DNA of 64,000 bases from Lepidodermella squamata. Its lineage: Eukaryota > Animalia > Gastrotricha. The stretch lies in assembly GCA_047495785.1 (NCBI GenBank), contig JBLDXI010000034.1, positions 1,240,001 through 1,304,000 on the forward strand, given 5' to 3'. The notes under the pieces were generated by a model, which worked only from the letters and a program-made list of their open reading frames with translations, did not search any database and had not been told where the DNA came from. Of the stretch, positions 21,001 through 52,117 are shown one piece after another; within the stretch, counting starts at the first letter, position 1; every line of letters starts with the position of its first letter. The position numbers were made by a program, and so were the translations under genes.

Positions 21001-21933
21001 ATGAAGTAGAAGCTTGTGTTCAGATAGTTGACCGCGTCAATGCTTGAGTTGAAAGCGACGTAGCTTGGTATGCCGGATGGCAGGGTAACTGCAGAGTCTG
21101 GCTTGCCATTCGGACCTGTTGTCAGCGTTGCATTGATAAAATGGCCGTCTTGGAAGCTCATATTGTTGTTTCGATAACCCAGCCAATCCATAGCTCCGGT
21201 GAGTCGATTGAAGGTCACGAAGAGCTCAGGATTCAAAGACGGGATGTAAATGTCTGGAATTGACACAAAATCTTCATCTAGAACAGACGATTGAAGTTCT
21301 AACTTACAATACATGCAAACGCTTGGGAAAGCCTGGGTGCAAGCTGCCGCTGCCCATTTGTTGTTGGCGGCTCCGGTTTGGATCGAAGCACACTGACCAG
21401 CTGCTGAAGTGGATGGCTCGCTGGTCCCCCAAGGCAGGGCGTTGACGAAATTTGACCCAGCCATAGACACATAGGCTGAACCTTGGTACTGAGCCCCTAC
21501 CCATGTTTGCAGGTTCCTAAAAGAAAATGTTTAGCGAATTTCAGTAAAATTAAGGTGGTTTAACTTACGGTGAAGTCCTTAGTGTTGCGAGGAACACTGC
21601 TTCATCAGAATCTCTTGGCACAGATAAATGAGCGCCTGGTATGATAGCACTGCAAGCTGTATCTGCAGAACTGAAGTCGAGAGGAGCTGGGTTGTAGTAG
21701 TGCTACAATCGAAATCTTAGGAAAAAAGCCATCAGCAATACAGGAATAGCTTACGCAAGCAAAATTGTATTCAACCCAATCTGGCGGGCAGTAGTTCAAC
21801 GTGGTAACAGGTTGTAACAAACTGACCCCGGCCAGGAGAACAGAAATTATTGTGGCACGGTTGATCTAGTAGTTTATTTTCGAAATTGATGCGACTTTCA
21901 GTTTAATTTCAAACTTACGCCACTCGGCAACAT
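1..21933 (-). CDS. Giant polycystin-1-family (PKD1-like/REJ-like) receptor-channel subunit; 3' end lies beyond the left edge
   Basis: ATG at 21933 gives MLPSG|INRATIISVLLAGVSLLQPVTT (signal peptide). ~26 GT-AG introns, mostly 48-61 bp, join the minus-strand ORFs. Last visible exon 4720-1 has the same frame at both ends and the ORF track shows no stop in it. It encodes GPS (CLCNHL/TSF), TM1, PLAT and TRPP-like S4-S6 (RLLRFNRR...SLFSMLLGVYDF...LVNAFVAIL). Confidence 0.95.
3190..3345 (-). other. GAIN/GPS autoproteolysis motif of the polycystin
   Basis: SCKFYDKPSKSWSSAGCRVG...TQCLCNHL^TSFSSNF immediately before TM1; predicted cut between L (3225-3227) and T (3222-3224). Confidence 0.92.
5730..7560 (-). 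other. REJ module of the polycystin
   Basis: LEYGFYRLSL, LVVGL, SLSYDPD, YTPFNFDCTGF, LPAGVPEENYLVTIYVDATDPFDS are REJ-type motifs between the PKD repeats and GAIN. Confidence 0.85.
10930..13145 (-). other. Five tandem C-type lectin-like domains
   Basis: Repeated CPxGW...CY, AxxxC...LAS, WIGL, WxWxDG, FICE/K patterns in ORFs 10893-12398 and 12668-13630 and the exon between them. Confidence 0.88.
16600..16880 (-). other. WSC domain
   Basis: FIGCY...LTVAMCRQVC...FAGLRSGDTCLCAN...CNVPCDGNARDWCGGANHFSVY. Confidence 0.9.
18365..18885 (-). other. Kringle domain split by intron 18488-18750
   Basis: CYHTSQGGWEYSGKVSWTKNFAKCRKW...|...AYCRNPEP...KPWCFTG...WDYCDIPVC. Confidence 0.92.
18564..18634 (+). 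repeat. Intronic 9-bp minisatellite (GGGTGATYR)n, ~8 units
   Basis: gggtgatca gggtgatta gggtgattc ggggtgacc ... inside the enlarged polycystin intron 18488-18750. Confidence 0.85.
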
Positions 21934-22669: not shown

Positions 22670-25600
22670 TCATTCAGTAATGGCTTGGTTGAAAACCGAA
22701 GATCCAGAGGCTGAAGTAGCCGAGGACTGGCGAGTAACGACTTTCGGTTCAGGCGTCACTGCTGAATCTGTACTGTTAACTGAGAGTTTCTTCACCAGCG
22801 AAATCGAATGACGCCATACATCACGGCCTCGATTTCCTCCACTCTTTTTGTTGTTGCTATTAACCCCGGCGGTCAGCATTGCCCATTGTGAGGTCGTTGA
22901 GTGGAATTCACGAGAAGACCGGCGGCCGAAACCTACCTTGCTCGGGGAGATTGAGATGTTATCCCCATCGCCATCATGCTCATCCAGCTCCTCCTCTAAA
23001 TCACTGATGCCTTCATCTTCACGTCGACCGAAATTGTTCTCGTTAAGGCGTTTCAGCATAGTTTTAACCAGGTCATGCTGAGCGTTAAGCTTGCTGTAGT
23101 AAGCTCCGACAGTGCGAGATCTTCGCGTCATTTCTTCCATTAGGAAGGAGAGATCAACTCGGTTCTTACCAGCACCGACGCCTAACAACTGATCATCATC
23201 TCGCTCCCTCTGTAAATCGTCCATCAATTTGTCGTAGATTTCGTCATGCCACAGGGATGCAACCATTTTGCTGAATGGGTTCATGTTGTGCCTAGAATGC
23301 CCACACTTATTTGGGTTGCACTTGTAATTCTTCGGAATCCGGCCGCAAAGGAATCCTTTCGGCAGCTTGTCTTCCAACCACGTGAACAGTTCAACTTGCA
23401 TGGAAAGTCGCTCCAGTCTCGCGTTTTTCCTGATTGTTTCAATGTCCCCAACTGCCAGACCGACTAACAGATTCTTCAGCAACATTGGGATCAAAATCAG
23501 GAAACCAATGTAAGCAAAATAGGCAAGCGATCCATAGACAAATTTAGCTTGGCCACCAATCGCTGGCGATATGATATCAGCGTAATTCAGTTCACCAGTC
23601 AACATAACCAGTGACGTCATCATTGAGATCATGGGCGTCCTGAACTGCTCAGTCGGGCCATCGTAAGTTCTGAATGTCATGGTGAATAGAAGGGAGAATC
23701 CGATGAAGAGGCTGCTGAACGCCAGATCGGTGAGAATGAACGACTTGAAGGTGTGGCCGAACATGACTATAGTCATTCCTAAGCTTCGATACCGCATTAG
23801 GATGAAGAGAACCATCCAGCCGAGGAACATGGCCAAAGCTGAAGTGACTAGCTGAGTTTTCACGCTGAACATGCCTTCAAAGTACAGAGGGGCGAGAGAC
23901 GCGACGGTACAACCATACATTACCCATTCTAGCCAATTCTAGTGGGGAAAGATTTATTAAGGAGGATTTTTTAATATTACACCCCCACTTACCGACATAA
24001 GTATGAAATATCCCAATTTCTGATGGCAAATAGCGCAAATCTGGTATATCATGTTAGCTATGAGAATTAGAATGCAAACGCTTATGCGGATAAGCATGTG
24101 AAAGTCGATTTCGTGCATTCGTAGAAAAGCCGTGCCGTCAGCAAGCGAGTAACCCTGCGGCCCCTCCGCTTCAACATCGCTCCCATCATCGTAGTCGTAG
24201 CCGATAATTTGTTCGGTGTAGTTTGTCCCGTTGGAATCGTTCAATGGTATAACAACATCAGTCAGGCGGTTTAGGTCATTCGCTACTATGCTGGTGAACG
24301 TCAGTAGCAGGATGAAAATAAGCATGCGGAAATTGAAAACATGGGCTCCAAACGTCTCCCACTTTCGTTTCAGAAAAACCAAGCTCAAAGGGTGGGTGAG
24401 TAGGTTCAAACGATTGTAACGGACCATGAGCTACAAAGCAAGGTTCACTGGTATCTCGTGTAATAAGGTGGATTTACTTACGTTCATAGGTTGCGTCGGG
24501 GTGCGGCCTTTGTACTTTTTGTTAAGGTAACACGGCGTTTGCATGAATTGGAAATCGTAGTCCACTGTAAATTCTGGCGAGTTGCGATCGCCCGAGCTGT
24601 ATTTGATGCATCTATCCATCACGAGAAGCGCAGCATTAGGGCAATTTTGAATCATCCCTATGAAATGAGTCATGTAGAGACTCCGCATTTTCATAATTTC
24701 TTCGAAACGAGGACTCTTCATAATTGTCGAGCAGACTTCTGTATGAGACTTTGTAATAGCCATGTCGAGAAAGGTAGCTTTCTCCGCATTGTGCTCAAAT
24801 TTAGCCCCTTCGTTGATTAGATAATCGACAACTACAGGGTGTCCATACTCTGCAGCCAGATGCAACGGGGTGTTCAGAGCTCTGTTCTGATTATTCAGCA
24901 GGTGCGGGGCAAGAGAATAAATTAGAAAAACGCAATCGAAATGACCATTTTGAGCCGCTAAACATGGGGGGAAATTATAACTTCCTTGAAATGGATCAAT
25001 GACTTACCCAAATGAAGAGGCGAATTGTGGTTATGGTCTTTCGTCATCAGAGCGCCGTATCTCACGAGCAACGAGATAATTTTGACTTGGCCAGACAACG
25101 CTGCGATGTGGAGAGGAGTCCTACCCTCAGAGTCAGTTTCATTGATCAGCAAAACCCCGCTTTCGTTCGCTAGGAGTTGCAGGCACGTGTGCAGTCGACC
25201 ATGCCTCGCAGCGATATGCAAAGGGTTCATTTTACTGTTGTCTTTCAGTGTAATACTAGCCCCGAGTTGCATCAACCCATTCAGTGAAGCAAGTTGGCCT
25301 AGTTTCGACGCGTACAGCAAAGGAGTGCAGCCGTAGTCGTCCTTATCGTTCAAAAGCTGCTGCAAGTTCTTAAGCTGGCTCAATTCAATTTCGCGGATTC
25401 TCGAGCCGTTCAGAATTGCGAGATGCAGGAAATTTCGGTTGTTAGTATCTCGAATAGTCGTGTTAGCTTTCTTTCTCAAGAGAAGATTGACAACATCGAT
25501 AGCGTCTTTTGAGGCGGCTAGTAACAACGGGGTCCTTCTCTCGCCATCTTGGGCATTCACACTTGCCCCCTCGTCAATGAGCTGCTCAACAACAAACACG

Positions 25601-27080
25601 TGGTTGAACATCGCAGCTTTATGGAGAGGGGTCTGCTCCAAGATATCCCGGCTGTGAATGCAGGTTTCCTTTTTATCAGGCTGGGCATCGAACATCAGAG
25701 CGATCAGGTCTCTCGCACCCTGAGCTGCAGCGTTGTGGACTGCAGTTTGCCGGTCGTTGACTTGCTGCTCGTCGATATCAGCCCCAGCTTTCAAGCACAC
25801 GCGAACAGCCTTTTCATCGCCACTGATCACAGCAGCTTGTAAGGGGGATATGTTGTCCTTGTCTGTCATCGTGATCAGCTGTTTGCCAGTGATACCAATT
25901 TTTTCGGCTTAAAACGAGAAAATGCATGAGTAATATGACGTATGACGTTACGCCTCAGTGAAAAGAAAAAGAGGCTTTACACCCTAACCCTAACCCTAAC
26001 ACCAGCCCCAACCCCAACTCTGAATTTAACCCTAATGCTAACCCTAACCCTGACCCTAATCCTAACCCTGATCCTAACCCCAATCCCAATTCTAATCTCA
26101 ATGTCAACCCTAACCCAACCTAAACCTCAACCCTAACCCTAACCCTACCTCAACCCTAACCCTAACCCTAGCTTTATCCAAGTATCCAAGTTCGGGGTAA
26201 TCAACCAACCATATTCGATCAAGACATCGATAACTTTTGATGACCCAGACTTCGCAGCAGATTGGATGACTGGACATCCAGGATCACTTCGTTTCAGAAG
26301 ATCAGCGCCTTTTTCGAGCTGGAATGTTTAAATTTAGGGTTTTCTCAAAAGCAGAAGTTTGAATCTCACCAGATAACGAGCTATTTTAACGCTATCCTTT
26401 TGGCAAGCAATATGGAGCGGCGATCCGCCCAAATCACCCGGAAGTTGAACAGCCCACGGGTACTTCTCAATTATCATCTGAACATAGTCCAATCGATCGA
26501 GCTCAATCGCAACGTGGAGTGGTGCCATGTTCCTAACATTTTTGACCGACATACTCGCCCCGTTTCTCAACAACCATTTGAACGCCTCGGTTTGCCCCTT
26601 TTCAACAGCATGATGCAGTGGCGTGTTCTTCAACTTGTCCTGTCCATTGAGTAAGGCATCCTTTTGTATGCCGTCTGTGATTTTCGACAAGGCATAATCC
26701 ATCACTTCAATTCTGGACCAGAAAGCGGCTTGGTGGAAAATGTTCATGCCTCTTAGATCGACGATAGTCAAACGAGACGGATCTTCTTCCAAGAGCCGTT
26801 TGACCTCATTGAGATTGCCTTGGAGGGCCATTTTCAGTATGAAGTAAGGAGATTCATCGAACAAACAGACAAGCTTCTCCTTTTTCTCTTCCTTCTTCGG
26901 TGATTCAGGTGGCTTGAAAACATCGTTGTCTTTCGATTTGATTGAATCGGATGAACTTGGTCTTGCGTTGAAATCGTTCTTTATCAGGTCATCTTTGCAG
27001 TTCTCACGCTCGAGTGTGAACCCAACAGGAGCGGATGATATGTTTGAAATTTTCTGGATAACTTTAAAGGCCGAACGCAT
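22670..27080 (-). CDS. TRPA1: TRPA1-like ankyrin-repeat cation channel, 1300 aa, 6 exons
   Basis: Exons 27080-26370, 26318-26210, 25907-25008, 24957-24482, 24430-23993, 23938-22670 total 3903 nt in frame. Many TPLH ankyrin repeats, LLTHPL...KW pre-S1, NWLEW in S3, pore MLTGELNY, NLLVGLAVGDIETIRKNARLERLSMQV. Start codon less certain than the rest. Confidence 0.93.
25978..26170 (+). repeat. Degenerate (CCCTAA)n telomere-like tract inside TRPA1 intron 25908-26209
   Basis: ~30 hexamers such as accctaaccctaaccctaa, with variants cccaa/cctga/tcctaa. Confidence 0.9.
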
Positions 27081-27390
27081 GTTCCCGGTTAAAAATCCGA
27101 AATGATAAGAGGGCAATTTTTTCCGCAACCAAATCAAGAAATTAAAAAAACCACGCAGCTTTGCTCCCTCGAGCATTTTTAATTGAAAAATCATGCTGTT
27201 TTTTATATTTCTCTCAATTATTGATGTGCGAATGGGTGAATGCTAAGTGCTATATTAAAAATTCATTTGATATTAATATTGATTATTTTAAAACAACGCT
27301 GTTCACACAATGGCCAAACAACAGGAGATATCCGATCTGGAATTATCGATTAAACAAAAAACCAAGCAGTCTATGCTTCATTAGGTATGG

Positions 27391-29297
27391 TTAGGCTGTG
27401 GAAACAACGTTGCTGCGATAAGCTTTCAAAATGCTGCGTTGCCAGCGCGAATACAAGCTTTCGATAGCGTCAAATCTTTTTTCAAGATATGAGGGCGGGA
27501 GTGACTGCAAAATTACGGATACAAGCGAACCGGAAATGACGACGCAAATCGAGAATTTGCGCACCCAAGCCACCTCCACAACATATCCGCCGAGTCTCCA
27601 AGTTGCAATTGCGAATCTAGAACAAAAAAAATTCAAAAAAACCAAGACTGAAAAATCGACATACGTGGACCAGAATGCGGGTAAGAAAGTTATTACGAAA
27701 ATGACAAACATCAGCACTGATACTTTCATGAGGTAAATTTCTCGTCGCTGCGACCGTGAGACAGTTTGTAGATGACCAGATTTTGTTGTCTGCAATGTTA
27801 AGTCCAGCGTGCTTTTTTGACTTCCAGTTGATTTCAACCTCGCGATCGACTTGAAAGCCTTCCAATAGTTGTATGCCAGGAAGGGAATCGCGAAGCTGTA
27901 GTTTGAAGCGTAATACAGAACCATCAAAAACGAAGTGTCGAAATCGTTGATGAAGTTGAAGTCCCATTGTGAGCACAAGGCGATTGGTTTGTCGCCATTC
28001 ACTCCAGTAACTATCAGGGTTTTTACAGCCGCTGTATTGAAAGGCCAAACCAGAAAAGCTAGACTCATCAATGTGCATGAAACCAACTGAACGAGAGCAA
28101 TGGCCAGAATTTTGAAGGTTTGCGATCGATAATCAGTGTATTATACCAACCGGTTTTTATTCTGAAAAAACTGACCACCGGTTTAAACCAGTTTATACCG
28201 GTAAAAAACACCGGTTTTTATTAATTTTACTAAACATAGGATTTGGCCAAGTAAAGTGTCCAAGAGCTCAAATTCCATAGCTCACATCAACATTTCGGCT
28301 GCACCACGTTAATCTACGCGAAAAACTGCATAGTTTGATGTATTACTCGCCTATTATTATGAAAAAAATAGCCAACATTTCTTGGATGCAATAAAGCAAT
28401 AAAAATTAAAAAAATAGGTAATTATCTCCGGATCTAGGATAGCTATGAAAATTCTGAAAAAGGGATTGAATTCCCCGTGCAAACTTTACCCCTCCGGCGT
28501 TTCTAAGGGGGATCTTGAGATCAAAAGACGCGGTTTTGCCGATTCTTTTGAAAAAAAAGTTTTTTACCATCTCCCGCTTGTCAATTAAATAACCGGAAGT
28601 GAATTTTGATTTTGCGATATTTTCTTTATTTTAACGAATTTCGCAGAGAAATTTGGTTTATATGGGTAATCTGAGGCGCTGAACACGCTGAGCACATCAG
28701 TTTCTTCACTGGGATTATCGATTGTCGATTTATGGTGAATGATTGATTTTAAATTTTCTGAAAACTAAATGTTTTTTGAATACCTGAAAATCCTGCATGA
28801 CAAATGACCATTCACAACAAGAACAAGACTTGTTCAGGCACAGTCAGGCACAGTCGCCGTTCGTAAGATATCAAAGAATCAATGTTCGTTCCGTAGATAC
28901 CGGTGACCCAGCCAATTACGAAAATAGCTTTGCAGGTCCAATCGGGCCATTCCCAGCTTCCTGTTTCAACTGGCCCGATGTAAATGAGAAGTAAAAACAC
29001 AGCGAATGAAATGCTGCGTATGTTGGAGATTGTTGCTAGCATTAAGAAGTCCCGCTTAACCCCGCGGCGAATGAAGAATCTCACATTGACAATGCTAGCT
29101 GCTATCAGTGCCACCAGCAAAATTGACACTATTATCGGGAATATGAGACGATCAGGCAGGCCACGATTAGACAAGTCGTGTACATAGCCGACAAAGTATT
29201 GCTTTGGGTGGCCGTAGCCTTGCTGTGGTAGGTTGACTATTACCCATCCACTGTTAACCATCTCAGCTCGCGGAATACTCTCTTGAGACATGTTCAT
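27391..29297 (-). pseudogene. Rhodopsin-class 7TM receptor, copy 1, disrupted after TM3
   Basis: Homologous to copies 3/4. ~14 bp of coding sequence replaced by ~707 bp of foreign DNA (28134-28840) with no restoring splice acceptor. Shared intron at 27617-27664. Confidence 0.85.
28134..28840. mobile_element. Composite non-coding insertion (DNA-transposon/MITE-like pieces)
   Basis: Begins CAGTGTATTATACCAACCGGTTTT with ACCGGT repeats; absent from paralogous copies; right junction has tandem tcaggcacag. Confidence 0.6.
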
Positions 29298-31104: not shown

Positions 31105-32117
31105 CTCCAAGTTGCGATAGCGAATCAGTAACGATACAAAACTTCATTTTGAAAATTCCTGAAAACATACTCGACATACGTTGACCAGAATGCAGGTAAG
31201 AAAGTGATGACAAAAATTACAAACATGAGCACTGATACTTTCATGAGGTAAATTTCTCGTCGCTGCCACCGCGGAATAGCTCGTAGGTAGCCAGATTTTG
31301 TTGTCTGAAAGGTTACGTCTTGTGTGCTTTTTTGACTTCCACTAGTTTGCAGTCTCGCAATTGACTTGAACGCCTTCCAATAGTTGTACCCGAGAAAAGG
31401 AATTGCGAAGCTGTAATTTGAAGCGTAATACAGAACCATTAAAAACGAAGTGTCAAAATCGTTGATGAAGTTGAGGTCCCATAATCAGCAGAGTGCAATT
31501 GGCCTGTCACCATTAACCCCCGTAACAATCAACGTTTTGACTGTCGCTGTATTGAACGGACAAGCAAGAAAGGCCAAGCTCATCAAGGTACATAAAATCA
31601 ACTGAACGAAAGCTATAGCCAGAATTTTGAAGGTTTGCGATCGATAATTGATCGATTTGGAGGTCAAGCACAATCGCCGTTCGTAAGATATCAAAGAATC
31701 GATGTTCGTTCCGTAAATGCCTGTAATCCAGCCAAATACGAAAAGAGCTTTGCAGGTCCCATCAGGCCAATCCCAGCCGCCTGTTTCGATAGGTCCGATG
31801 TAAAAAATAAGCATGACGACGGTGAAAGAAATGTTGCGCATGTGGGAGATGGTTGCTAGCATTAAAAAGTCGCGTTTGACCCCGCGTCGCACGAAATATT
31901 TGATATTAACAATGCATGCTGCTATAAGTGCTAGTAGCAAAAGTGCTACTATCATCGGGAATATCAGACGATCGGGCATGCCGCGAGCTGAGAAGTCGTG
32001 TGCATATCCGATGAAATACTCTTTTGGGTGGCCGTAGCCTTTCTGTGGGAGGTTGACTCTTACCCATCCACTGTTTACCATCGCAGCTCGCGGAATACTT
32101 TCATTAGACCTGTTCAT
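31105..32117 (-). pseudogene. 7TM receptor copy 2 (pseudogene)
   Basis: In-frame TGA at 31485-31487 where paralogs have Ser/Thr; intron acceptor mutated AG>TG at ~31126; exon 2 truncated after ~7 codons. Confidence 0.88.
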
Positions 32118-36772: not shown

Positions 36773-38011
36773 CTAAGCATTCGATGTTCCATTACGTAGT
36801 GTTAAAGCTGTTGAAACAACGTTGGGCCGATACGCTCTTGAAATGCTACGTTGCCAGTGGGAGTACAAGCTTCCGATGGCGTCAAATCGCTTTTCAAGAT
36901 ATGAGGGCGGGAGAGACTGTAAAATTGCTGATACAAGCGAGCCGGAAATGACGACGCAAATTGAGAATTTGCGCACACAAGCCACCTCCACAACGTAAGC
37001 ACCGAGTCTCCAAGTTGCAATTGCGAATCTAGAGCAGGCAAAAAAATAGAATTGGAAAATCTGGATAAAAATGACTTACGTTGACCAGAATGCGGGTAAA
37101 AAGGTGATGACGAAAATGACAAACATCAGCACAGACACTTTCATCAGGTAAATTTCACGACGCTGCCACCGTGGAATAGCTCGAAGGTGCCCAGATTTTG
37201 TTGACTGCAATGTAATGTCCTGTGTGCTTTTTTGGCTTTCAATTGCTTGCAACCTCGCGATCGACTTGAACGCCTTCCAATAGTTGTAGGCTAGAAAGGG
37301 GATTGCAAAGCTGTAATTTGAGGCGTAGTAAACAACCATCAAGAACGAAGTATCGAAATCGTTGATGAAGTTGAAGTCCCATTGCGAGCAGAGTGCAATT
37401 GGTTTGTCACCGTTAACGCCTGTAACAATCAACGTTTTGACCGTTGCTGTATTGAATGGCCAAACCAGAAAGGCCAGACTCATCAAAGTACATAAAATCA
37501 ACTGGACGAGGGCTATACCTAGGATTTTGAAAGTGTTTGATCGATAGGTAATCGATTTCGAGGCCAAGCACAGTCGCCTTTCGTAAGATATCAAAGAATC
37601 GATGTTCGTTCCGTAGATACCGGTGACCCAGCCAATTACAAAAATAGCTTTGCAGGTCCAATCGGGCCATTCCCAGCCGCCTGTTTCAATAGGCCCAATG
37701 TAATAGATAAGCAAAAACACAGTGAAAGAAATGCTTCGAATGTGAGAGATGGTTGCCAGCAAGTCGCGCTTCACTCCGCGTCGCACAAAAAACTTGATAT
37801 TAACAATGCAAGCTGTTATCAGCGCCACCAACAAAAGCGCAACTATGATCGGAAATATAAGACGATCCGCCAGGCCGTGGGCTGATAAATCGTGCGCATA
37901 GCCGACGTAGTACTCTTTAGGGCGGCCGTAGCCTTGTTGTGGTAGGTTGACTCTAACCCATCCGCTGTTGATAAACTCAGCGCGCGGGATAACATCCTTG
38001 GACCTGTTCAT
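36773..38011 (-). CDS. Divergent rhodopsin-class 7TM receptor, copy 3, intact ORF (395 aa)
   Basis: Exons 38011-37080 and 37028-36773 total 1188 nt. Seven hydrophobic segments, N1.50, ECL1 WEWPDWTC, SYERR at the DRY position, ECL2 Cys, TM6 FVITFLP. Confidence 0.9.
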
Positions 38012-38555
38012 AGCGCACTGGAAAAAATAAACCCCTTACAAGGAGCCTCATAAGGAGGCTATTATATATATGAATGCATCCTCCTTGTCAGGCGACCTGT
38101 GTCGCCTTTCAAGCTTGGTATGTCTTAGAAGGAGGCATCATGCATCCACCTTAACGGTGAGATAAACAGTTGGTGTCTTTCAAGGTCTTCTATCAAGGCG
38201 CCAGCGGCCCATTCGTTGCGCAAAACCCCGCCCGGGCGCGCCGACCCGCCCACCTGTCCTCGGCTGCTTTTCACGCTCATCCAATCGTGATAAACAAAAC
38301 GACAGACACGTTTTCGGCCCAAATTTTATTAAAATTTGCTTCGCTAATCAAATTCATTCCCATGATACAATGGAGACGGAATAAAATTGAGATGCTTGAA
38401 TAATAATTATTGATTAGCAGCGATACATCAATATTTATCAACAATTACTCGACAATAGCTGAGGCTTCCAACATCAGGGCATCAAGAGCATAAATAACTG
38501 CTAAAATCATACAGTCTGTTTCATTATTATGAGTACGTCATTGCGAGCGTTCAAT

Positions 38556-41500
38556 CTAGAATTTGTAAGGCAGCGAGTCGATATTCAAATAATTCAAACC
38601 GTTATGTTTGATGATGGCGAAGCAGCGCTTGATAGGCAAAGCAGAATGAGGAATGAGTTGAAATTTTCGAGGTTCAGTAAATTTGACGAGGAATGACGAA
38701 TACTTCTTACAAAATCGGTCAATCTCTAGTTCCGATAACACAAAGTAAAGCTCATTCTCGTGTGAATAAATAAGTTTGATGAAGTGAAATGTCATTTCTT
38801 TGCCGGGTTCGAACCAGCCAACCTCGGGCTTCGATGTCGAAATTGACGCTCCGGTGGTGAAAAAGGCGCCATTGAACCGAATTGAAGCATGAACCCTCGC
38901 CTCGACTGGCAGCTGAAGCTCGCCCAGATCGCAGCCAACCAACTTGTCCTTCAGCTTGCTCACCTTGCCGCCTTCAACCGAGCCCGAAATTTCAGCACTG
39001 CTCAAAAATCTCCCTGATTGATGCTTCGCAATGTTAAAAATCTGAAGCATTGGGTTGTTGTAGGTTTTTGGCTCCATCTTTGATAGGCCACGCTCGAAGC
39101 CAAGTGAAGAGTAAAATCGAGCGGGACCAAAGTCGAGAATCTGCTGCGGGTAGTGGATGGAGTTATGAAACTTCGTAACGATCGCTGATTCGCCGTAGGT
39201 TTTTGCAGTTAGTTGCAGAAATTTGAATATTAAATTTTCGAGCAGTTGAACGTCTTCCTTGAAAATATGGCTCGAGAATACGAAGGCCAAAACTTGATTC
39301 AACAGGGTGACGCATCGATATTCAGGAGTTCCAAAGAACGTGGGGCTTGTCACCAGTTTGGTTTTATCGAGCACGAAACCCAATCGCGGAAGAAGTGTCC
39401 GCATTTGACTTGCATTTTGATGCGTCTTCATTTCCCCGGAAACGATTTTGAAATTAGCTGAAGGTGCGGCCTCGTAAGTTGCGATTTTGTCGAATCGATG
39501 TTGCTCGATAGCTCGGTTCAGGTCTTCATCGTTCAGGCCGTAGCTGGTTTTTGCCTTGGTTAGGGCGCCGGTGAGGGTGTAATCGGCCACACCTTCAAGG
39601 TAGTCATGGGCCGGTTCACTAACGATGCACGCCGGGAAAATCGGCTTCAAATGCCGAACCTCGATGAACGCTGAGAGATGGCCCGTGAAACCATATTTGG
39701 ACATGCTGTGAAAAATAAGGTTATTTAGCTAGATAGTTTGAGAATAGGATTTGTTTAATTTTCAAAACAATTTCGAAAAAATTGATTTAAAATATTGTAT
39801 AGCAATTTCGAAAATTTGAATTTGAAATTTTGTATACGTATAGCAATTTTGAAAATTTGAATTTAAAATTTCGTATACGTATAGCAATTTTGAAAATTTG
39901 AATTTAATTTGAACATTTTCTGATCCATTTTTATTAAATTAAATTAAAACATTTTCGGAGCCACTTTTATTAAATTTAATTTAAAAATTTTCAGAGCGAT
40001 TACTGAATAAAAATTTATTTCATATTAGGGGTGATTGATGAGCAACGATACCCGAAGAGATGAGCAGCGATTTTACCCGAAGAAATATACAGGAAACACT
40101 CAGAAAATCCCATTGTTAACTGTTTTGGTCATTTTGCCGGGTTGGACCAAACTTCTTCGGAATCTTTTATTCCTATTAAAATGCTTGCCTAATATTCTCG
40201 ACCTTTTGTAAATTTTCTGTAATTTTTCCGGCCATGATATGTGACAAAATTGAAGATTAAGAAACTCTAATGGGACTTATAGGACACGATGGCGAAAAAT
40301 TAGAAACAAATCAAGCTAGCAGTTGAGTGACAGTAATATTCTTACATGGCCTTGCGATCAGCTAGCCTTGTCGAGGCTATCTCTGCGGACTGAGCGATGA
40401 GGCGTTCGGAGGTTCGTAGCTGAACATCGGTCGCTACGAATACTTTGCCAAAGTCGCCGCGAGGCAATTCACATTTGCTACAGGTAAGCTTCGCCGAAAA
40501 CGACTCGAACAGGCCGATCAGCTGATGTTGAGCCAGGTTATCAGCTAGACCACTGATCAACAGGATTTGTACTGATTTGTTTTGAACGATAATTGGCGCA
40601 GTAGTTTCCGTTTCGACCTTTTTCACAACAGCATTCAAAGCTACAAAACAGGATGTTTAATTTAGTGACCCCCTGCGGTCAAATTAATCGAACCTGTTAT
40701 TTTCCTCGTGTCTTTTGGAAGTTCACAACTTTTGGATGCAGCCAGCAGGAAATGATATTCAGGACTGAAAAATAGTAATTAAAAATCTCGGTGCGATAAA
40801 TAGCCACGAAAATGTCATATTTATCGCAATATTAATTCTTCGCAAATGGATCTCAATTGCTAGAAATTTTTACCTATAGTCGTATCGATTTTAAATTATT
40901 CAACTATTATAGCGAAAAACCACGAATTCGCAAAATAAGACCCGACCTCAAAGCTTGCCCTCCTAATGGTTGTATAACTTCCTAATTTAGTCATAACTAA
41001 TCCCAATTATTCGAAAGCGACTTTTTGAGTTCTAGGCGTTCTACTATGGACTTATCTGATCAGTCCGAAAATTTAACGTTTTGGGAAAATCACTTACATT
41101 TTCTCGAATAACCTTGCCACCATTTTCCACTGAAACACCGCCATTTTCTGACGATTTACGTAAGTGCCCAATGCCGAAACTGAGACGAACTCGTCGAAAA
41201 ATAGAAAAAAAGGAACGACATATTCACAAGGGCTTTGCTCGATCAGCTGGCGAATAACCGCTCCGTCCAATGGTGACGTGAGAACGCCGGTATCATCAGA
41301 CTTCAAGAGGCTCTCCTTTTTGAATATATTCAACAATGATGGCTTGCTGTTGAGGAGATGGCCAACTTGGGTTGCGATCGATAAATAGCGAAACGACTCG
41401 CAGGCTTCAGCTTCGCATGGCGACAGAGCAGCTAGCAATTTTTGACGATTGAACGTCGTCAGCATATTTTCGAAAATTTTGTCGAAAATCAAGCCGCATG

Positions 41501-41903
41501 AATTCGGCTTGAAGTGTTGCAACAAGCAGCGAACGAGACGCTTAGCGATAAATTGAATTACGAAACTCGTGATAGATTCCGTAGCCGCGAATTCGAACTT
41601 CAGTTTGAAGACAAGGTCCAACAAAGCCACATTCAGAGTTTTACAGAGCACGTCCTCCGCATCGAGTTCGAGTTGAAAAACCTCGGCAGGTGTCGGTTGG
41701 TCGGATTGATCATCACCAGTTAGTAGCCCTGCGAAGACGTCATTCGAGGTCGAAGGTACTGTTGCGGGCTTCGGAGGTTGCGGTACAGTGCAGGTTTTTT
41801 GGTGCTTATTCCGAGATGAACGATTACCATGAAAATCGGTTTTGCAGACGTCACACACGACCGGTTGCTTTCCAGCATAAGGTTGATAATTTAAATCATC
41901 CAT
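38556..41903 (-). CDS. CMC/EnSpm-type DDE transposase, 773 aa, 4 exons
   Basis: Exons 41903-41098, 40764-40694, 40640-40346, 39705-38556 total 2322 nt in frame. N-terminal CxxC...HxxxC finger; FFDEF, ADNLAQHQLIGLFESFS...CSKC, AHDYLEG, KFHNSIHYP...FGP...GFER motifs. Confidence 0.9.
39798..39906 (+). repeat. ~41-bp tandem repeat (~2.7 units) in a transposase intron
   Basis: tatagcaattt(c/t)gaaaatttgaattt repeated three times. Confidence 0.8.
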
Positions 41904-42359
41904 ATCCTACGGATAAATTATTTTTAAATTTCCAATACTTCATTAGACGTAGCAAAAATTACACACTCACGAATTTATTTATAATCCCCGTAAGTTAAAA
42001 ATTCAACAAAATTCAATGCTATTCTCGCTTTAATTAAAACAACAAACAAGGATTAAATCATCGCTCATCATTCGGAAACAAATCGAAAATCAGAAAATTT
42101 TAATTCATGTAACAGTAAAAAAATGACTGTAGCAATAGCAACCAATAGCAACAACAAATATTGTACACCGCAAGATCATCGGCAAATTTCATCACAAATT
42201 ACAATACATTTTTAAAGAGATTGATTTCGATACATGAACACGGACAGTTTAGCATGAAAATCCATCGAAACTTTTCGCAGTACGCTTGAACAAAGAATGG
42301 CAGGTTTTTGGTGAACAATTATTAAAAATTTTCGAATATAACAAAAAGCGTTTTCTACG

Positions 42360-44429
42360 TTAATTCACACGTGACCGGGTCGAGTTTCGAGTCGATTTTG
42401 TCGCGGGTTTCGGAGTTACTGTCGGAGTTGCTGAAGAACTCGCGCCAATGACACGCGAAGGAAGGCGCTTGGGCGAACGAGTCGATGACGGTGACGCCGA
42501 TCGTTTTGTTGCAACGATTGGGGTGGTCGCTGCTGCTGGATGTTGAGTTGGGGCCGGTTGAGCTGCGGCCGGTTGAGTTGAGGCCGGTTGGGTGCGGGGC
42601 CGAGTTTCGACTGCCGGAGTTCGTACCGCGGCGTCTGCGTCGATGACAACTGGTTGATGCTGGCCTTCCAGGTCGTCAAATATGTAGTCTCGGTCCTGGA
42701 TTCGATCGTCGTCATCGTTTTCGACCGGGTTTTCGACCGGGTTTTCGTTGGCGTGTTCTTCGGCTTCATCTTCATCGGCGACGTTGCGTGCCGCGAGAGC
42801 CCGCTGTTTTTGCCGCTTTACGTACTTCCGGTTGGAACACGCCTTGGCGACTGATGAGCGAAACATTTTCTAGAAGAAAAAACATTCCAATTTCAAAAAA
42901 TTTCAATTCAATTTTAAAATGTCAATTTTAATTTTAATTTCAAAATTTTAATTTTAATTTCAAAATTTTAATTTTAATTTTAATTTCAAAATTTTATTTT
43001 CAATTTCAAAATTTTTTATCCTCAATTTCAAAATTTTATTTTCAATTTCAAAATTTTTTATCCTCAATTTCAAAATTTTTTTTTAATAAATTTCGCTTTT
43101 CTTGAGTATTAAAAATGCGAAATTGATGATAATCCAATAATCTTGACAAACCTGATGGTCAGCCGAGTCGAGCAGCATTCCGGCGCGGTCCTGGTGCGTT
43201 CGACGCCACAACGTCTTAACCACATTAAGCGCAAACGCATAATCGCCCCGGTCGAAGCGGCGTCCCGGGTTTTGCCGAAGTAGTTCCTCGCATGTGAATC
43301 GCACTAGAGTCTTGTAGGTGGTGAATAGGGTTCCAGCCACCCACTCGCGATAGAGAGACGGGTGCGAATTTTTCATCGACTCCAACGTAATGGAAAAATT
43401 AACGGGCTCATCCTGAATGCAAAATCTAGTTTCAATTTTTCGGAAAAAAATCGAAAATGAGCTACAGACCTGTGGCTTCATGTTTTCACCCGCCATGGGT
43501 TCCTGCGGTCGCTTTGCTGCATCGACAACTAGCTGGCACGCGATACGGTGCGCGATCAGTGGGAAAATCTGCGAGATGTACTCCGGCGTCAACGCCGATA
43601 TGGTTGTTCGGTCAAGCAATTGTTCTGAAATTATTGAAGATAAATTAGAGCACTGAAATTATCACAGATATTATTCAGTTATTATTACTACTGAGTAATA
43701 AAATTGGGCCATAACATGCCCAATAATCAAAAAACAATCCTTAAAAAGCCAAAAATCAGGGTTGAATAAGAGCCACATTTTACCTGGCGTTAGCCATGCC
43801 TTGTACCTGTTCTAGAAAATTTGGCCCGCCAGGATTCCCCATTCAAATGTTTTCACGGCTCAAAGTTAGCACTTTTCTTTCGATTGTGGCCAAAAATATG
43901 TTGGAAAAATTCGAAAAATGACGAAAACAACGAAAAACGAAAAAACAACGAAAAATAACGAACACAAAAAATAACCAGTGTCAACGGGGTTTTTCGGGTT
44001 TTTCCGGTAAATTTTTTACTTCTTCGGTTAAATCGAGGATAAAAGACGATATACTCTCGGTGGGTTAAAAATAAAATAATTGGTTAAATTTCCGACAAAA
44101 AGTTGATGAATTTAAAATATTTGCTCAACTTCAGGGACACGCTGTAAAGTAAGGTAAACAAATTCCCGTAATTTTTTTCGGTTGTGAAACTCAAGGGGAA
44201 ACTAAAAAATTTGAAAATTTAGGGCGGCTCACCATGTGAAATTAATTACAATCAATAAGCTTTAAAAAAATTTATTAGGGCGCAACTTTTATATGAAACC
44301 CGCGTTACTAGAACATTAAAAAAAACCGAAATTACCGCTAAAGACGTTGATGAGTGCGGCCCGGTAATCCGGGTTATCAACACCAGCTTCGTCCACAAGC
44401 CCAGTGGCAATGGCGACGTAATCAACCAT
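42360..44429 (-). CDS. Transposon accessory protein with N-terminal SAM-like domain, 339 aa, 4 exons
   Basis: Exons 44429-44336, 43624-43470, 43412-43152, 42869-42360 total 1020 nt in frame. Splicing creates LINVFSEQLLDRTTISALTPEYISQIFPLIAHRI (SAM pattern); basic, acidic and Pro/Thr-rich tail. Confidence 0.75.
42895..43085 (+). repeat. AT-rich (AATTTCAAAATTTT)n minisatellite in an intron
   Basis: Directly visible tandem units. Confidence 0.8.
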
Positions 44430-45285
44430 GTCGCTAATACTGGTTATGCAAAAACAATTTCCTCTATAAATAACGGAAACAATAAAAATTAAATTCATGG
44501 TTGGAAATAATGATAAACGCGCAAAAATGTTAACTAACAGGCAACAAAACAATCTTTACAGGGGGTGATTTCCAAGTTATAATTCATGGTTGGTAACAAA
44601 TTTAAGGTGGATGCGAGCGGGGATAGCGTTTGCACCTGAGACTCGTTCTACTGGGTGGGTGAAAGCACTGAAAACTAGAAATGCCGCTAATGGTCACTAG
44701 TTACAAGGTCAGTCGCGTCATCAAATAGCAGCGTTAAACTAAGCTCCGCCCAACTCCCACGACCGCGACGAGATAATCGCCCACCTGTGGCTTTGCGTGC
44801 GCATTGTGGACCCGGCGCGGCCTGATATTTGAGCGATAGGATGAAAGGCGTTACAGCGCATCGTGCGAGAGGCGAGAGGGCGAGGAGCGAGGCGGCGAAC
44901 CGCGGCCATGATAAATCATACGACGCCGATTTTATCTAAGTATTCAACAACAGCGCGGTATGAATACTAAAACATGGTTCTAGGACCTATGACCGAATAT
45001 TATTGAAAGCAAAAGTGACACCAGCGGATAACTGAAAGGTATCAAAAACGGCAGGTCATAGGTGATAAAAACTACAGCCACCATGTAACGCGTCACCTCG
45101 ATTAGTAAAGTTTTATAAAACAAATAAAGGTTTACCAAGCTTGCTGTGTGCATTCGAATAAACAAGTTAACCAACCGCAGCACGGAGACACTCAACGCGC
45201 GTAAAAAATTGTGAAAAAATTTGGGACTGACGTTCAGCAAAGTGATAAATAACAGCAGGCGAATACGACGTTTAGGAAGAATGAA

Positions 45286-45684
45286 TTAACCAGTTTTCAC
45301 ATTTTTCATTAACATTTCAGTCCCTAATATCCGCCGCTTGTTGGTAGTAGCCCATATTTGAGAGGCCAAGCCAATTAAAAAAATAAGCGGATTTAAAAAA
45401 AAACATTTAATCAAGAATTTTAATATTTTGAACATGGGTATACTTAAAATGTTGGCCGCTATGGAAAAAATCCGGTAATTCAGCGCCTTAATTAATTTCC
45501 GCTCATATTTCATGACGTCGGCCGACCAGTCCCCTTTCGGCCGCATTATCTCATATGACCTATGAACCCGCCGCCCGCTATAATAAAATCTTGCAAAATT
45601 GTGAAAATCATGACCACTTTTGGCCGCGAATTTTGCCGCGGAAATAATAACCGTGCGCACGCAATGCAAAAGCGTGGATGGCAG
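45286..45684 (-). other. Possible cyclin-box-like ORF/exon inside the CACTA element
   Basis: LLHCVRTVIISAAKF...DVMKYERKLIKALNYRI resembles cyclin helices 3 and 5; upstream exon not resolved. Confidence 0.4.
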
Positions 45685-46593
45685 CTAAACCACGATCTTC
45701 GCAACGCTAATTGATCTAAAACGCTGCGGTAAAATTCAACTAATATTTGTTAATAAAGTAATATAGTCAACAACCGCATCTACATGAATCAATTAGCATG
45801 ATCCACATGAATGACGAGTTTTAATAATGCCTAGACGTCACAAAATTCTAAAACAACAAAAAAAGGAAAATCAGAGGCGCCTCGCTTAAATATTCGTCCA
45901 CGAAATTAGAAATTGAAATTGAGGGGATAAGATAATAAATGCAATAGAACCGAAGTGCGCAGACTAGTGCGCGACCATTGCGCGCGCGCACGTCGCGCGA
46001 AGGCGACAGCTATATTGTTGCGCGCTATTGAGTGGGTCATTCACTCTTTTACGTGCAAATCTTACCTAATGAGTGCGTGACTAAAAAGACATCGTAATAC
46101 GCGCGCACTGATGAGCGCCGTCGCCTTATTGAAAGAAGGTGACCACGCGAATAAGAGAGGTGACTAAGGAGGCTATTTTTATCAGTGCGTTTGAATTAAA
46201 ACGACTGAATCCTTCCTAAAGTAAGAGCCAGCGATTTCCCAGACAATGTCACGGGAAGCGTTACGCTCAGATGATGTTTGCGGGGGGAGTCTATCATTGC
46301 AGCCTATTGTGGCTATATTAAAAGGAAATAATGTCGCTACTCGAGCGGGAAACGTAGCTCATAGGGTTCAGTGTTGATCATAATTCATTTCGCGACGTAT
46401 GGGACCACTTAGCAGCAGGATTTCTGACGTATCAAACTAACATTAGGAAGCAAAATGGCGAGTTAGTCTAAAAGGAAGTTAAACATTCAAACAAATTGAT
46501 CTCACGCAAGGCACATCGTGCAAATGCAGTTTTTATTAGCGATCCGAGAACAAATAATTGATATTCAACATTTTTGTTAGCTGTCTCAACGTT

Positions 46594-47256: not shown

Positions 47257-48486
47257 TTAGGTCGAGCTTGTAGCTGCTGAAACAGTGTTGCTGCGAAACC
47301 TTTTTGTTGGCATCTTGCCTTTCCAGCGAGTGTACAAATTTCCGACGGCGTCAAATCGTTTCTCAAGAAATGATGGTGAGAGAGATTGCAAAATAGCGGA
47401 TACAAGCGAGCCGAAAATGACGACGCAAATTGCGAATTTGCGGACCCAAGCCTCCTCCACAACGTAAGCACCGATACTCCAAGTTGAGACTGTGAATCTG
47501 GAAAAAAAACAACAACTCAACAATTAACACTTTGAAAAATCGACCTACGTTGACCAGAATGCGGGTAAAAAGGTGATGACAAAGATGACAAACATCAGCA
47601 CAGAAACTTTCATCAGGTAAATTTCTCGACGCTGCCATCGTTGGACCGCTTTGAGGTGGACAGATTTTCTCGACTGAAATGTGTTGCCTTGTGTGCTGTT
47701 TTGGCTTTCACTTGCTTTCGACACTGTGATTGATTTGAACGCCTTCCAGTAGTTGTAAGCCAGAAAGGGAATCGCAAAGCTGTAATTTGATGCGTAATAA
47801 ACAATCATCAGAAACGAAGTGTCGAAATCGTTGATGAAGCTGAAGTCCCACTGTGTGCAGATGGCGATTGGGCGGTCACCATTCACACCCGTAACAATCA
47901 TTGTCTTCACTGTTACTGTGTCGAATGGCCAAACTAGGAAAGCCAAGCTCATCAAAGTGCATGAAACGAGCATAACGAGAGCCATAGCCAGTATCTTCAA
48001 GGTGTTTGCTCGATAATTGATCGATTTCGAGGACAAGCACAATCGCCGTTCGTAGGATATCAAAGAGTCGATGTTGGTTCCGTAAATGCCGGTAATCCAA
48101 GCGCTAACGAAAAAACCTTTGCAGGCCCAATCAGTCCATTGCCACCATCCAGTTTCCACAGTTCCAATGTATAAAATGAGCATAGTCACCGTGAAGGAAA
48201 TGCTGCGTATGTGGGAGATGATTGCCAGCATTAGAAAGTCGCGTTTGACCCCACGTCGAACGTAGGTTTTTATGTTAAAAATACAAGCTGCTATCAGCGC
48301 TACCAACAAAATGGAAACTATCATCGGGAATATCAGACGATCAGGCATGCCACGAGCTGATAAGTCGTGTGCATAGCCGATAAAATACTCTTTCGGGTTG
48401 CTGTAGCCTTGCTGGGGAAGGTTGACCCTTATCCAACCACTGTTCACCATCTCAGCTCGAGGAATACTTTTTTGAGACATGTTCAT
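47257..48486 (-). CDS. Divergent rhodopsin-class 7TM receptor, copy 4, intact (392 aa)
   Basis: Exons 48486-47549 and 47497-47257 total 1179 nt; same intron position and motifs as copy 3. Confidence 0.9.
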
Positions 48487-50313: not shown

Positions 50314-52117
50314 CTAAGCATTCGGTGTTTCATTAGGTAGGGTTAAAGCTGTTGAAACTACGTTAGTCCGATACGCTCTTGAAATGCTGCGTTGCCAGCG
50401 TGAATACAAGCTTCCGATAGCGTCAAATCTTTTTTCGAGAAATGACGGCGAGAGAGATTGCAAAATAGCGGATACTAGAGATCCGGAAATGACTACGCAA
50501 ATGGAGAATTTGCGAACCCAAGCCACCTCCACAACATAAGCGCCGAGTCTCCACGTTGCAATAGCGAAGCTAGAATAGAGAGAAAATTATTAATAATAAA
50601 ACTCCTGGGAAATCGACATACGTTGACCAAAACGCGGGTAAGAAGGTGATGACGAAAATGACAAACATCAGCACAGAAACTTTCATTAGGTATATTTCTC
50701 GACGCTGCCACCGCGGAATCTCTCTCACGTGACCCGATTTTGTCGACTGCAGTGTAACGTCTTGCATGCTTTTTTGGCTTTCGTTTGCTTGCAACCTGGC
50801 GATGGATTTGAAAGCTTTCCAATAGTTGTAGGCGAGGAAAGGAATCGCAAAGCTGTAATTGGAAGCGTAATACACAACCATCAAAAACGAAGTGTCGAAA
50901 TCGTTTATGAAGTTGTAGTCCCACTGTGAGCAAAGGGCAATTGGTTTATCGCCATTCACCCCGATAACAATCAGCGTTTTTACCGTTGCCGTATTGAATG
51001 GCCAAACCAAGAAGGCCAAACTCATTAAGGTGCATAAAATCAACTGAACAACAGCTATTGCCAGAATTTTAAGAGTATTTGATTGATAGTTGATCGATTT
51101 AGAGGATAAACATAATCGCCGCTCGTAAGATATCAAAGAATCGATGTTCGTTCCGTAAATGCCGGTGACCCAGCCAATTACGAAAATACCTTTGCAGGTC
51201 CAATCAGGCCACTCCCAGCCGCCAGTTTCAACAGGCGCGACGTAATAAATGAGTAAGAACAGTGTGAAGGAGATAGAGGTTTATTACACTTTGATAGATA
51301 GAAAATTACACTTTGATGGCTGTGTAAATTACACTTTGATAAGTGGATGAATCATATTATTATCGATTTTTTTTGCTGCGCAGCTCTTCGAGAAAATACG
51401 CTAAGTCAGAGATTTCAGCTGATAGCTGATCACTCAAACAACAAGACAATACTTTGCCCCCATTACCATGCGAGCGGAGCGAGCATGTGAGCCGGCCTCG
51501 GTAGTTTTTTGTGTTGAGTCATAAGTACGGGGAGAGTTTTCGAAATAACCAAAGTTTCAAGTGATACTTTTTGATTAAGGTCCCATGCTACGATGGGTTA
51601 CGTTACTTCTTGGTCAACGATTTGCATATGCACACGTGCTTGTGTGTGCAAAAAATGCTGTGCGCGCGTGCGAATCGAAACAAAAAAACTAGCAACACGA
51701 GCTGGGAGCGATCTCTTAGCGCCAATTCAGCAGCACTGCTGATGGTTTTTCGCAATAAAAACTGTCGCGCATATGCAAATCAAAGTTATTTCTTTGCCGC
51801 ATCTCACTAAAAAAGGTGGTGAGTGCTTATTTCAAGGATAATGCATCATTGCTAGTTAGTTATTCTGCCCGTTTTTCTCTCCTGTAGTTTACTGCGATGA
51901 AGCTAGTTTTTTGGAGGGGCACCTCAGCCCCCTTGGGAAAGCTGGCTGGTAGCTTTTTGGGAGGCCTTTCACAAGGTCTTCAAAAAGCTGCCAGTTTAGT
52001 TTTCCCCAGGGGGCTGAGGTGCCCCTTTTTAAAGCTAGTTTTATCAAAGTGTAATTTTCATTTATCAAAGTCTAGGGTATGCTGCGAATATGTGAGATGG
52101 TTGCTAGCATCAAAAAC
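50314..52117 (-). pseudogene. 7TM receptor copy 5: TM2 interrupted, 5' end missing
   Basis: Coding homology at 50314-50569 and 50622-51274, resuming at 52079-52117 after an ~804-bp insert, then stopping. Confidence 0.85.
51275..52078. mobile_element. Inverted-repeat element with a probable nested rolling-circle-type (HINE-like) element at ~51462-52042
   Basis: ctttgatagatagaaaattacactttgat (left) versus atcaaagtgtaattttcatttatcaaag (right); internal GCGAGCGGAGCGAGC motif and a 140-nt hairpin ending CTAGTTTT. Confidence 0.65.

Follow-up and report, generated by a model that had tools for sequence, protein, structure and literature searches.

Introduction

DNA transposons of the CMC and Transib clade (EnSpm, Mirage, Chapaev and Transib) share the motifs C(2)C and H(3-4)H, CA..TG termini and target-site duplications of 2-5 bp (PMC12730594). 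In Repbase, EnSpm now includes Mirage and Chapaev (PMC4455052), and Spm/En has a length of 8.3 kb (PMC2613891), comparable to the ~8-kb element that is the subject of this work. The element lies in a 64,000-nucleotide stretch of the genome of the gastrotrich Lepidodermella squamata (contig JBLDXI010000034.1, positions 1,240,001 to 1,304,000 of the forward strand), here called the window, and is inserted 4 bp before the start codon of a predicted seven-transmembrane (7TM) receptor gene, receptor copy 3. Mirage elements duplicate 2 bp of their target, and the length of the duplication is central to the assignment made below. An earlier note on this DNA had described a CACTA element whose terminal inverted repeat (TIR) supplies the receptor with a splice acceptor, and had suggested that the element may behave as a self-masking intron in the 5' untranslated region (UTR).

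For C. elegans, Conrad et al. (1991, PMC359875, as listed in PMC3730108) reported that an intron-like segment with an acceptor but no paired donor, placed in the 5' UTR, suffices for trans-splicing. The locus described here has a comparable layout. We propose that it holds a young, Mirage-like insertion and that receptor copy 3, if expressed, is expressed through the TIR acceptor acting as an unpaired 3' splice site; we regard this joint reading as evenly balanced between right and wrong.

Element borders and the empty site

The transposon spans window positions 38016-46187 (8,172 bp), runs from CACTG to CAGTG and carries its genes on the minus strand, in the sense of the receptor. In a search of the whole genome (121.2 Mb, 151 contigs), the second copy aligned to query positions 3-8174 only, so that 38016-46187 constitutes the element proper and the flanking CG is its target-site duplication. 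The earlier note had thus placed the element correctly with respect to the start codon, with borders (38009-46189) that are to be corrected. The features of the insertion are as follows; in motifs, a slash marks a putative splice boundary.

38016..46187, minus strand: CMC/Mirage-like DNA transposon, intact-looking and apparently autonomous, with a full-length second copy in unrelated flanks
38016..38040, no strand: TIR at the transposase-3' end, CACTGGAAAAAATAAAC..., identical in copy 2
46163..46187, no strand: TIR at the transposase-5' end, CACTGATAAAAATAGCC..., the inverted repeat
38014..38015, no strand: target-site duplication CG, ATG-adjacent copy, from the empty site in the paralogue
46188..46189, no strand: target-site duplication CG, distal copy, from the empty site in the paralogue
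36773..38011, minus strand: receptor copy 3, a 7TM gene of a lineage-specific family, exons 38011-37080 and 37028-36773, 395 codons
46201..46219, minus strand: displaced native acceptor region of copy 3, CTTTAG/GAAGGATTCAG/TCG, from comparison of the receptor copies in the window

The inverted arms (38014-38038 and 46165-46189) are imperfect, with 25 nt each and 80% complementarity. Close to the ends lies a subterminal 7-mer, GCCTCCT or AAGGAGG, which occurs four times within 140 nt of the element ends and not once in the intervening 7.7 kb. A duplication of 3 bp fails at both full-length copies, where the flanks would read ACG versus CGC and TAA versus AAC.

The empty site can be reconstructed from the receptor family itself. 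Read on the minus strand, the element end runs into the receptor start codon (38011) as a T-run, CCAG/TG, CGCT and ATG. The closest receptor paralogue, with its ATG at 32117, reads GGATTCAGCCGTTTTGATTCAAACGCG-ATG, whereas copy 3 reads GGATTCAGTCGTTTTAATTCAAACG, the element and then CGCT-ATG; when the element and one CG are taken out, copy 3 regains the paralogue layout, ...TTCAAACGC-ATG. On the far side of the element, positions 46190-46290 align with the region upstream of the same paralogue. This comparison proves that the element inserted here, that it duplicated 2 bp and that the native upstream region was shifted past 46189, a shift which the earlier note had already recognized. Each of the four full-length receptor copies of the window has an invariant TCAG 21-28 nt upstream of its start codon, and the one belonging to copy 3 now lies 8.2 kb from its start codon. 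The element recently jumped into the ~25-nt leader of copy 3, between the conserved upstream acceptor of the family and the ATG. No empty-site allele of this insertion was found in the assembly search.

The open reading frame (ORF) of copy 3 is intact, as had been noted, and its two exons are parted by a 51-nt GT-AG intron. In sequence, copy 3 shares 78-84% identity with the neighbouring receptor copies. By eye, the translation contains seven hydrophobic segments with an ERR after the third. The receptor has no match in Pfam, even at E 10, and among its language-model neighbours the ten best named Atlas clusters are all rhodopsin-type 7tm_1 (score 0.94). The family yields more than 130 genomic matches, many of whose members carry stops or are pseudogenes, with two or three broken members inside the window and further arrays on contigs C66, C54, C43 and C32. 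Its loci in the window are two-exon 7TM genes:

27664-29297, 31179-32117, 37080-38011, 47548-48486 and 50621-51304: receptor family loci

Transposase and classification

The main gene of the element is the following.

38556..41903, minus strand: transposase gene of four exons (41903-41098, 40764-40694, 40640-40346, 39705-38556), 773 codons plus stop

Its three introns measure 53, 333 and 640 nt. The protein carries an N-terminal C2H2-type finger followed by the pattern D, D, C(2)C, H(3)H, E. With a first profile built from five in-genome paralogues of the last transposase exon, 2,647 proteins match at E<=1e-3; the full-length ones comprise 760-840 aa and are matched over their C-terminal halves. 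In an alignment of 70 relatives, D306, C326, C329, H406, K553, H555 and H559 never vary, and D220 and E579 hardly do. The profile of these 70 relatives maps back to three open frames of the element (E 2e-15, 2e-16 and 6e-67), and the window ORFs carry all of the motifs: GLADNLAQ...CSKC, KFHNSIHYP and GFERG. An AlphaFold model of the closest full-length relative, P0001, and not of the window protein, has a predicted local distance difference test (pLDDT) score of 88; in Foldseek, the best solved structural matches of P0001 are the RAG1 core (E 1e-10), BbRAGL and HzTransib (2e-6).

Annotation by name was less productive. None of the element ORFs matched Pfam, even at E 10; one relative matches DUF4218 at a sub-threshold E of 2e-4, and this domain also occurs in one Atlas neighbour cluster. 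Among PDB sequences, a profile matched only the N-terminal C2H2 fingers, and cluster annotation of the best relatives returned no names, these being anonymous proteins.

Judged by its motifs and termini, the element appears to belong to CMC, that is, to CACTA in the broad sense. The CACTA label given earlier holds in this broad CMC/EnSpm sense and does not extend to canonical CACTA, as the duplication is 2 bp in all four insertions of the family and its relatives. The same duplication length, 2 bp and not the canonical 3 bp, together with the motifs, places the element in a subgroup that is best described as Mirage-like. It adds a new, low-copy member to a known kind of transposon.

One further candidate was rejected: on contig C30, the "1057-aa open frame" next to a distant transposase relative is a hexapeptide-repeat ORF and not a transposase. 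At that locus (L051 7189-9975, G000:C30:360188-362974, minus strand) lies a 928-aa hexapeptide-repeat ORF with LbH_EIF2B in 11 stretches (E 1e-66). An 831-aa open frame runs opposite to it, and both adjoin the distant transposase relative.

Other copies of the element and activity of the family

The second full-length copy is located 370 kb away on the same contig (G000:C34:900411-908639), in flanks unrelated to those of the window copy. Between the two copies there are 7 substitutions and 5 repeat-length indels; so few substitutions over 8,172 bp mean that one or both of the insertions are very recent. Copy 2 lies in sense orientation within coding exon 2 of a Cys-loop ligand-gated-channel-like gene, which it interrupts, with AA duplicated on either side. 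Removing it in silico restores GLFITMYTLLTVPLA, compared with GLVLTTYTLFTVPLA in the neighbouring paralogue. The acceptor-like end of copy 2 also stands 4 nt before an ATG, there an internal Met codon, which we regard as coincidence.

A related subfamily with ~52% transposase identity is represented by an element of 6,837 bp on contig C11 (duplication AA) and one of 6,813 bp on contig C29 (duplication TG). The ends of both read CACTGTAAAAAAC..., with CACTG...CAGTG termini, and the C29 element differs from its C11 sister copy by 82 mismatches. The C29 element (L059+L060 positions 5490-12302) splits a continuous short-chain dehydrogenase ORF in antisense orientation. All four insertions therefore bear 2-bp duplications (CG, AA, AA and TG), three of which were checked against an empty-site or continuous-ORF reconstruction, and two of the four lie within coding exons, one in sense (the channel-like gene) and one in antisense (the dehydrogenase).

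The exact ends of the window element occur at only four genomic loci, namely the two full copies and two shorter relatives. An exact 17-mer of the 38016..38040 TIR has only four occurrences genome-wide, and an exact 20-mer of the 46163..46187 TIR is found in two places, with two one-mismatch relatives. The shorter relatives measure ~2.9 kb (G000:C31:1984099-1986995) and ~4.5 kb (G000:C34:558067-562525), are 87% identical over the terminal 195 nt and probably arose by internal deletion. The location of three of the four family members on contig C34 suggests local hopping.

Fresh copies, 2-bp duplications and insertions within coding exons characterize a very low-copy family that is apparently active and favours neither 5' UTRs nor a particular orientation. 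The earlier note had raised such a preference as a point to check; two of the other copies lie in coding exons, one in sense and one in antisense.

Splice-site resemblance of the termini

The two sites on which a splicing role of the element depends, and a TATA-like motif between them, are as follows.

38018..38031, minus strand: acceptor-like site in the TIR, pyrimidine run plus CAG, with AG at 38019-38018, 6 nt before the ATG
46060..46068, minus strand: donor-like TAG/GTAAGA, with its G at 46065, 122 nt inside the 5' end
38064..38070, minus strand: subterminal TATATAA, ~57 nt before the receptor ATG, with a similar TATATAAA in the 87%-identical ends of the two shorter relatives (L005/L006)

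All three had been correctly read in the earlier note. The TIR acceptor scores 8.1 with a position weight matrix, against 4.9-18.6 for the 13 inferred local acceptors, and ranks sixth among the 328 AG sites of the element, in the top 1.5% of AGs on that strand; the matrix, built on these 13 sites, is overfitted, scores the conserved native TCAG poorly and serves for ranking only. The acceptor is thus good by local scores, without being special to this insertion. Read outward on the minus strand, the TIR at 38016..38040 presents a T-run followed by CCAG/TG, the TIR at 46163..46187 presents the likewise acceptor-like TATTTTTATCAG/TG, and the termini of the related subfamily read TTGTTTTTTACAG/TG. 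Since the T-run with CAG/TG recurs at either end of the two copies as well as in a subfamily of ~52% identity, it is a property of the termini and was not acquired at this site.

We next consider the self-masking intron that the earlier note had proposed, in which transcripts from the native promoter would lose an 8.05-kb 5'-UTR intron from the 46065 donor to the 38018 acceptor and retain 122 nt of the element. Donor and acceptor both exist and match the local consensus, the donor being the only GT[AG]AG in the first 400 nt of the element, and maize dSpm is reportedly spliced out using an acceptor in its TIR. Against this stand the ten host introns inferred in the window, which measure 48-143 nt, nine of them 48-61 nt, all with T-rich tracts and YAG; even the longest of the element's own introns reaches only 640 nt. 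Between the 46065 donor and the TIR, five AG sites outscore the TIR site and fourteen score at least as well as the weakest local acceptor. These five better acceptors, the exons of the element and nine AATAAA signals on its sense strand would all have to be skipped, and the native upstream acceptor (46205/46216) would itself be processed first. The donor, moreover, is not kept in the C11 relative, which has GATAA at this place. Taken together, these features make an 8-kb cis-spliced intron highly improbable.

The ribosomal protein genes S28e and L38e are both split by introns.

Possible routes of receptor expression

By its position, the insertion would cut the receptor ATG off from its native acceptor and promoter. 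RNA reading through from the element genes, or across the element, would then reach the TIR acceptor. If the host performs spliced-leader trans-splicing, a leader could be added 6 nt before the receptor ATG, at 38017 (leader/TGCGCTATGAAC), which would make the receptor the final cistron in the string of transposon genes. The layout of the element is compatible with such leader addition, as TAG precedes the transposase ATGs and TCAG the receptor ATGs. The transposase ATG (41903) has a TAG acceptor 3 nt upstream, with an AATAAA 72 nt before that acceptor, an interval that resembles operon-like spacing within the transposon. In three subfamilies with ~50% identity (window, L052 and L053), a TAG stands 1-3 nt upstream of the transposase ATG in each case. 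After the insertion, the receptor ATG has the same acceptor-before-ATG layout as the ATGs of the element itself. The transposase gene heads toward the TIR acceptor and stops ~540 nt upstream of it, followed by a signal that matters for this route:

38325..38330, minus strand: AATAAA, likely the transposase poly(A) signal, ~226 nt after the stop and ~312 nt before the TIR acceptor

Several observations weigh against expression of copy 3 through the TIR acceptor. Most transcripts of the element may terminate at the AATAAA 312 nt upstream and never reach the TIR. Losing copy 3 would probably carry no cost, as the family has more than 130 matches and includes many pseudogenes. So young an insertion is expected to leave the ORF intact; given this age, and with sister copies in coding exons, the intact ORF is uninformative on tolerance. 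Finally, a protein word-index search with the 311-aa receptor exon and the 382-aa transposase exon returned no matches; for the transposase, the blank result is explained by the length window of the search, full-length relatives having 760-840 aa.

Several of these facts recur in a plain knock-out, in which the element keeps copy 3 apart from its native acceptor and promoter, no productive use is made of the TIR acceptor and the gene is newly dead, or a heterozygous null, with an ORF that has not yet decayed. The extreme youth of the insertion, the sister insertions in coding exons, which are necessarily disruptive there, the broken members of the family, including those in the window, and the AATAAA before the TIR acceptor all fit such an outcome. 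A knock-out accounts less readily for element genes that run toward the receptor and for a strong unpaired acceptor 6 nt before its ATG; in trans-splicing animals, such acceptors are normally used wherever RNA crosses them (Conrad et al. 1991). We consider a knock-out a serious contender that falls somewhat short of an even chance.

The TATATAA might alternatively act as an outward subterminal promoter that drives the receptor directly, without splicing. The motif is present, and a similar box is kept in the ends of the two shorter relatives; it is also an AT-rich string in an AT-rich subterminal region, and a transcript starting there would still hold the unpaired acceptor. The probability that we attach to this promoter is very slim, lower even than for the cis-spliced intron.

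With the TIR acceptor as an unpaired 3' splice site, transposon control of the receptor, which the earlier note had also envisaged, is possible, more plausibly by spliced-leader trans-splicing than by cis-splicing. A wider form of the idea can be postulated, in which the termini of the family double as portable, outward spliced-leader acceptors, so that an insertion before an ATG would make the gene a last cistron and would not kill it. We hold this generalization to be rather unlikely. A literature search returned no report of a transposon end serving as a trans-splice site.

Other features of the element and the window

Two further open frames complete the gene complement described for the element.

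42360..42866, minus strand: accessory ORF of 168 aa, acidic and rich in Pro, Thr and Ala, without a Pfam match
43083..43619, minus strand: open frame of 178 aa in the 5' half of the element, without a Pfam match

The 168-aa accessory ORF has a TAG acceptor 3 nt before its ATG and differs between the element copies by repeat indels of 12 nt and 30 nt, both in frame. An Rfam search of the window returned nothing.

Elsewhere in the window, a very large multi-exon gene at positions 6226-21530 (minus strand) encodes a polycystin-1 / sperm-REJ-like receptor, which combines REJ, C-type lectin, F5/8 type C, WSC, laminin-G-like and Kringle domains. Next to it, at 22673-27242, lies a gene for an ankyrin-TRP channel. 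On contig C11, an unrelated element of 3,129 bp (L053 1419-4547, G000:C11:887418-890546) has TIRs that match at 23 of 24 positions, starting CACTTTAACTGCCC, and TTAA on both flanks; it may belong to a TTAA-targeting superfamily.

Significance

The window element is a well-delimited, apparently active, low-copy transposon, whose exact empty sites and 2-bp duplications aid the annotation of the family and mark ongoing transposition. If a splice or a leader were joined at 38017, the locus would constitute a natural experiment in which a transposon terminus supplies a working acceptor before a host ATG, and it would bear on the tolerance of insertions in the very short leaders of trans-splicing genomes. 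Were the termini portable leader acceptors, they would provide a buffering mechanism that exists only in trans-splicing animals and that brings host genes under transposon control.

Comparison with known systems

The window element resembles Mirage and other CMC elements in its CAC...GTG termini with a CACT start, its short TIRs, the subterminal 7-mer within ~140 nt of its ends and its multi-gene layout. It differs from them in having no significant match to any Pfam transposase model.

In common with En/Spm, the CACT terminus and its A-run read outward as a pyrimidine run plus AG, and a short subterminal motif is repeated in the window element as well. In contrast to En/Spm and dSpm, the duplication is 2 bp and not 3 bp, and the host is an animal with introns of 50-60 nt. 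Furthermore, dSpm is a short element, whereas the window element is full length at 8.2 kb and is described here at the level of its DNA sequence.

RAG1 and Transib are approached by the fold of the closest full-length relative and by the spacing of D, C(2)C, H(3)H and E. They are set apart by an identity of ~11-12%, by a duplication of 5 bp against 2 bp here, and by heptamer/nonamer-like ends and a RAG2-like partner, neither of which is present in the window element. The similarity to RAG1 and Transib is a property of the whole clade and not a special relationship.

The C. elegans outron belongs to another phylum, and its counterpart here is a candidate read from the genomic sequence. The likeness between the two lies in the arrangement itself, in that the TIR puts an unpaired consensus acceptor 6 nt before the receptor ATG.

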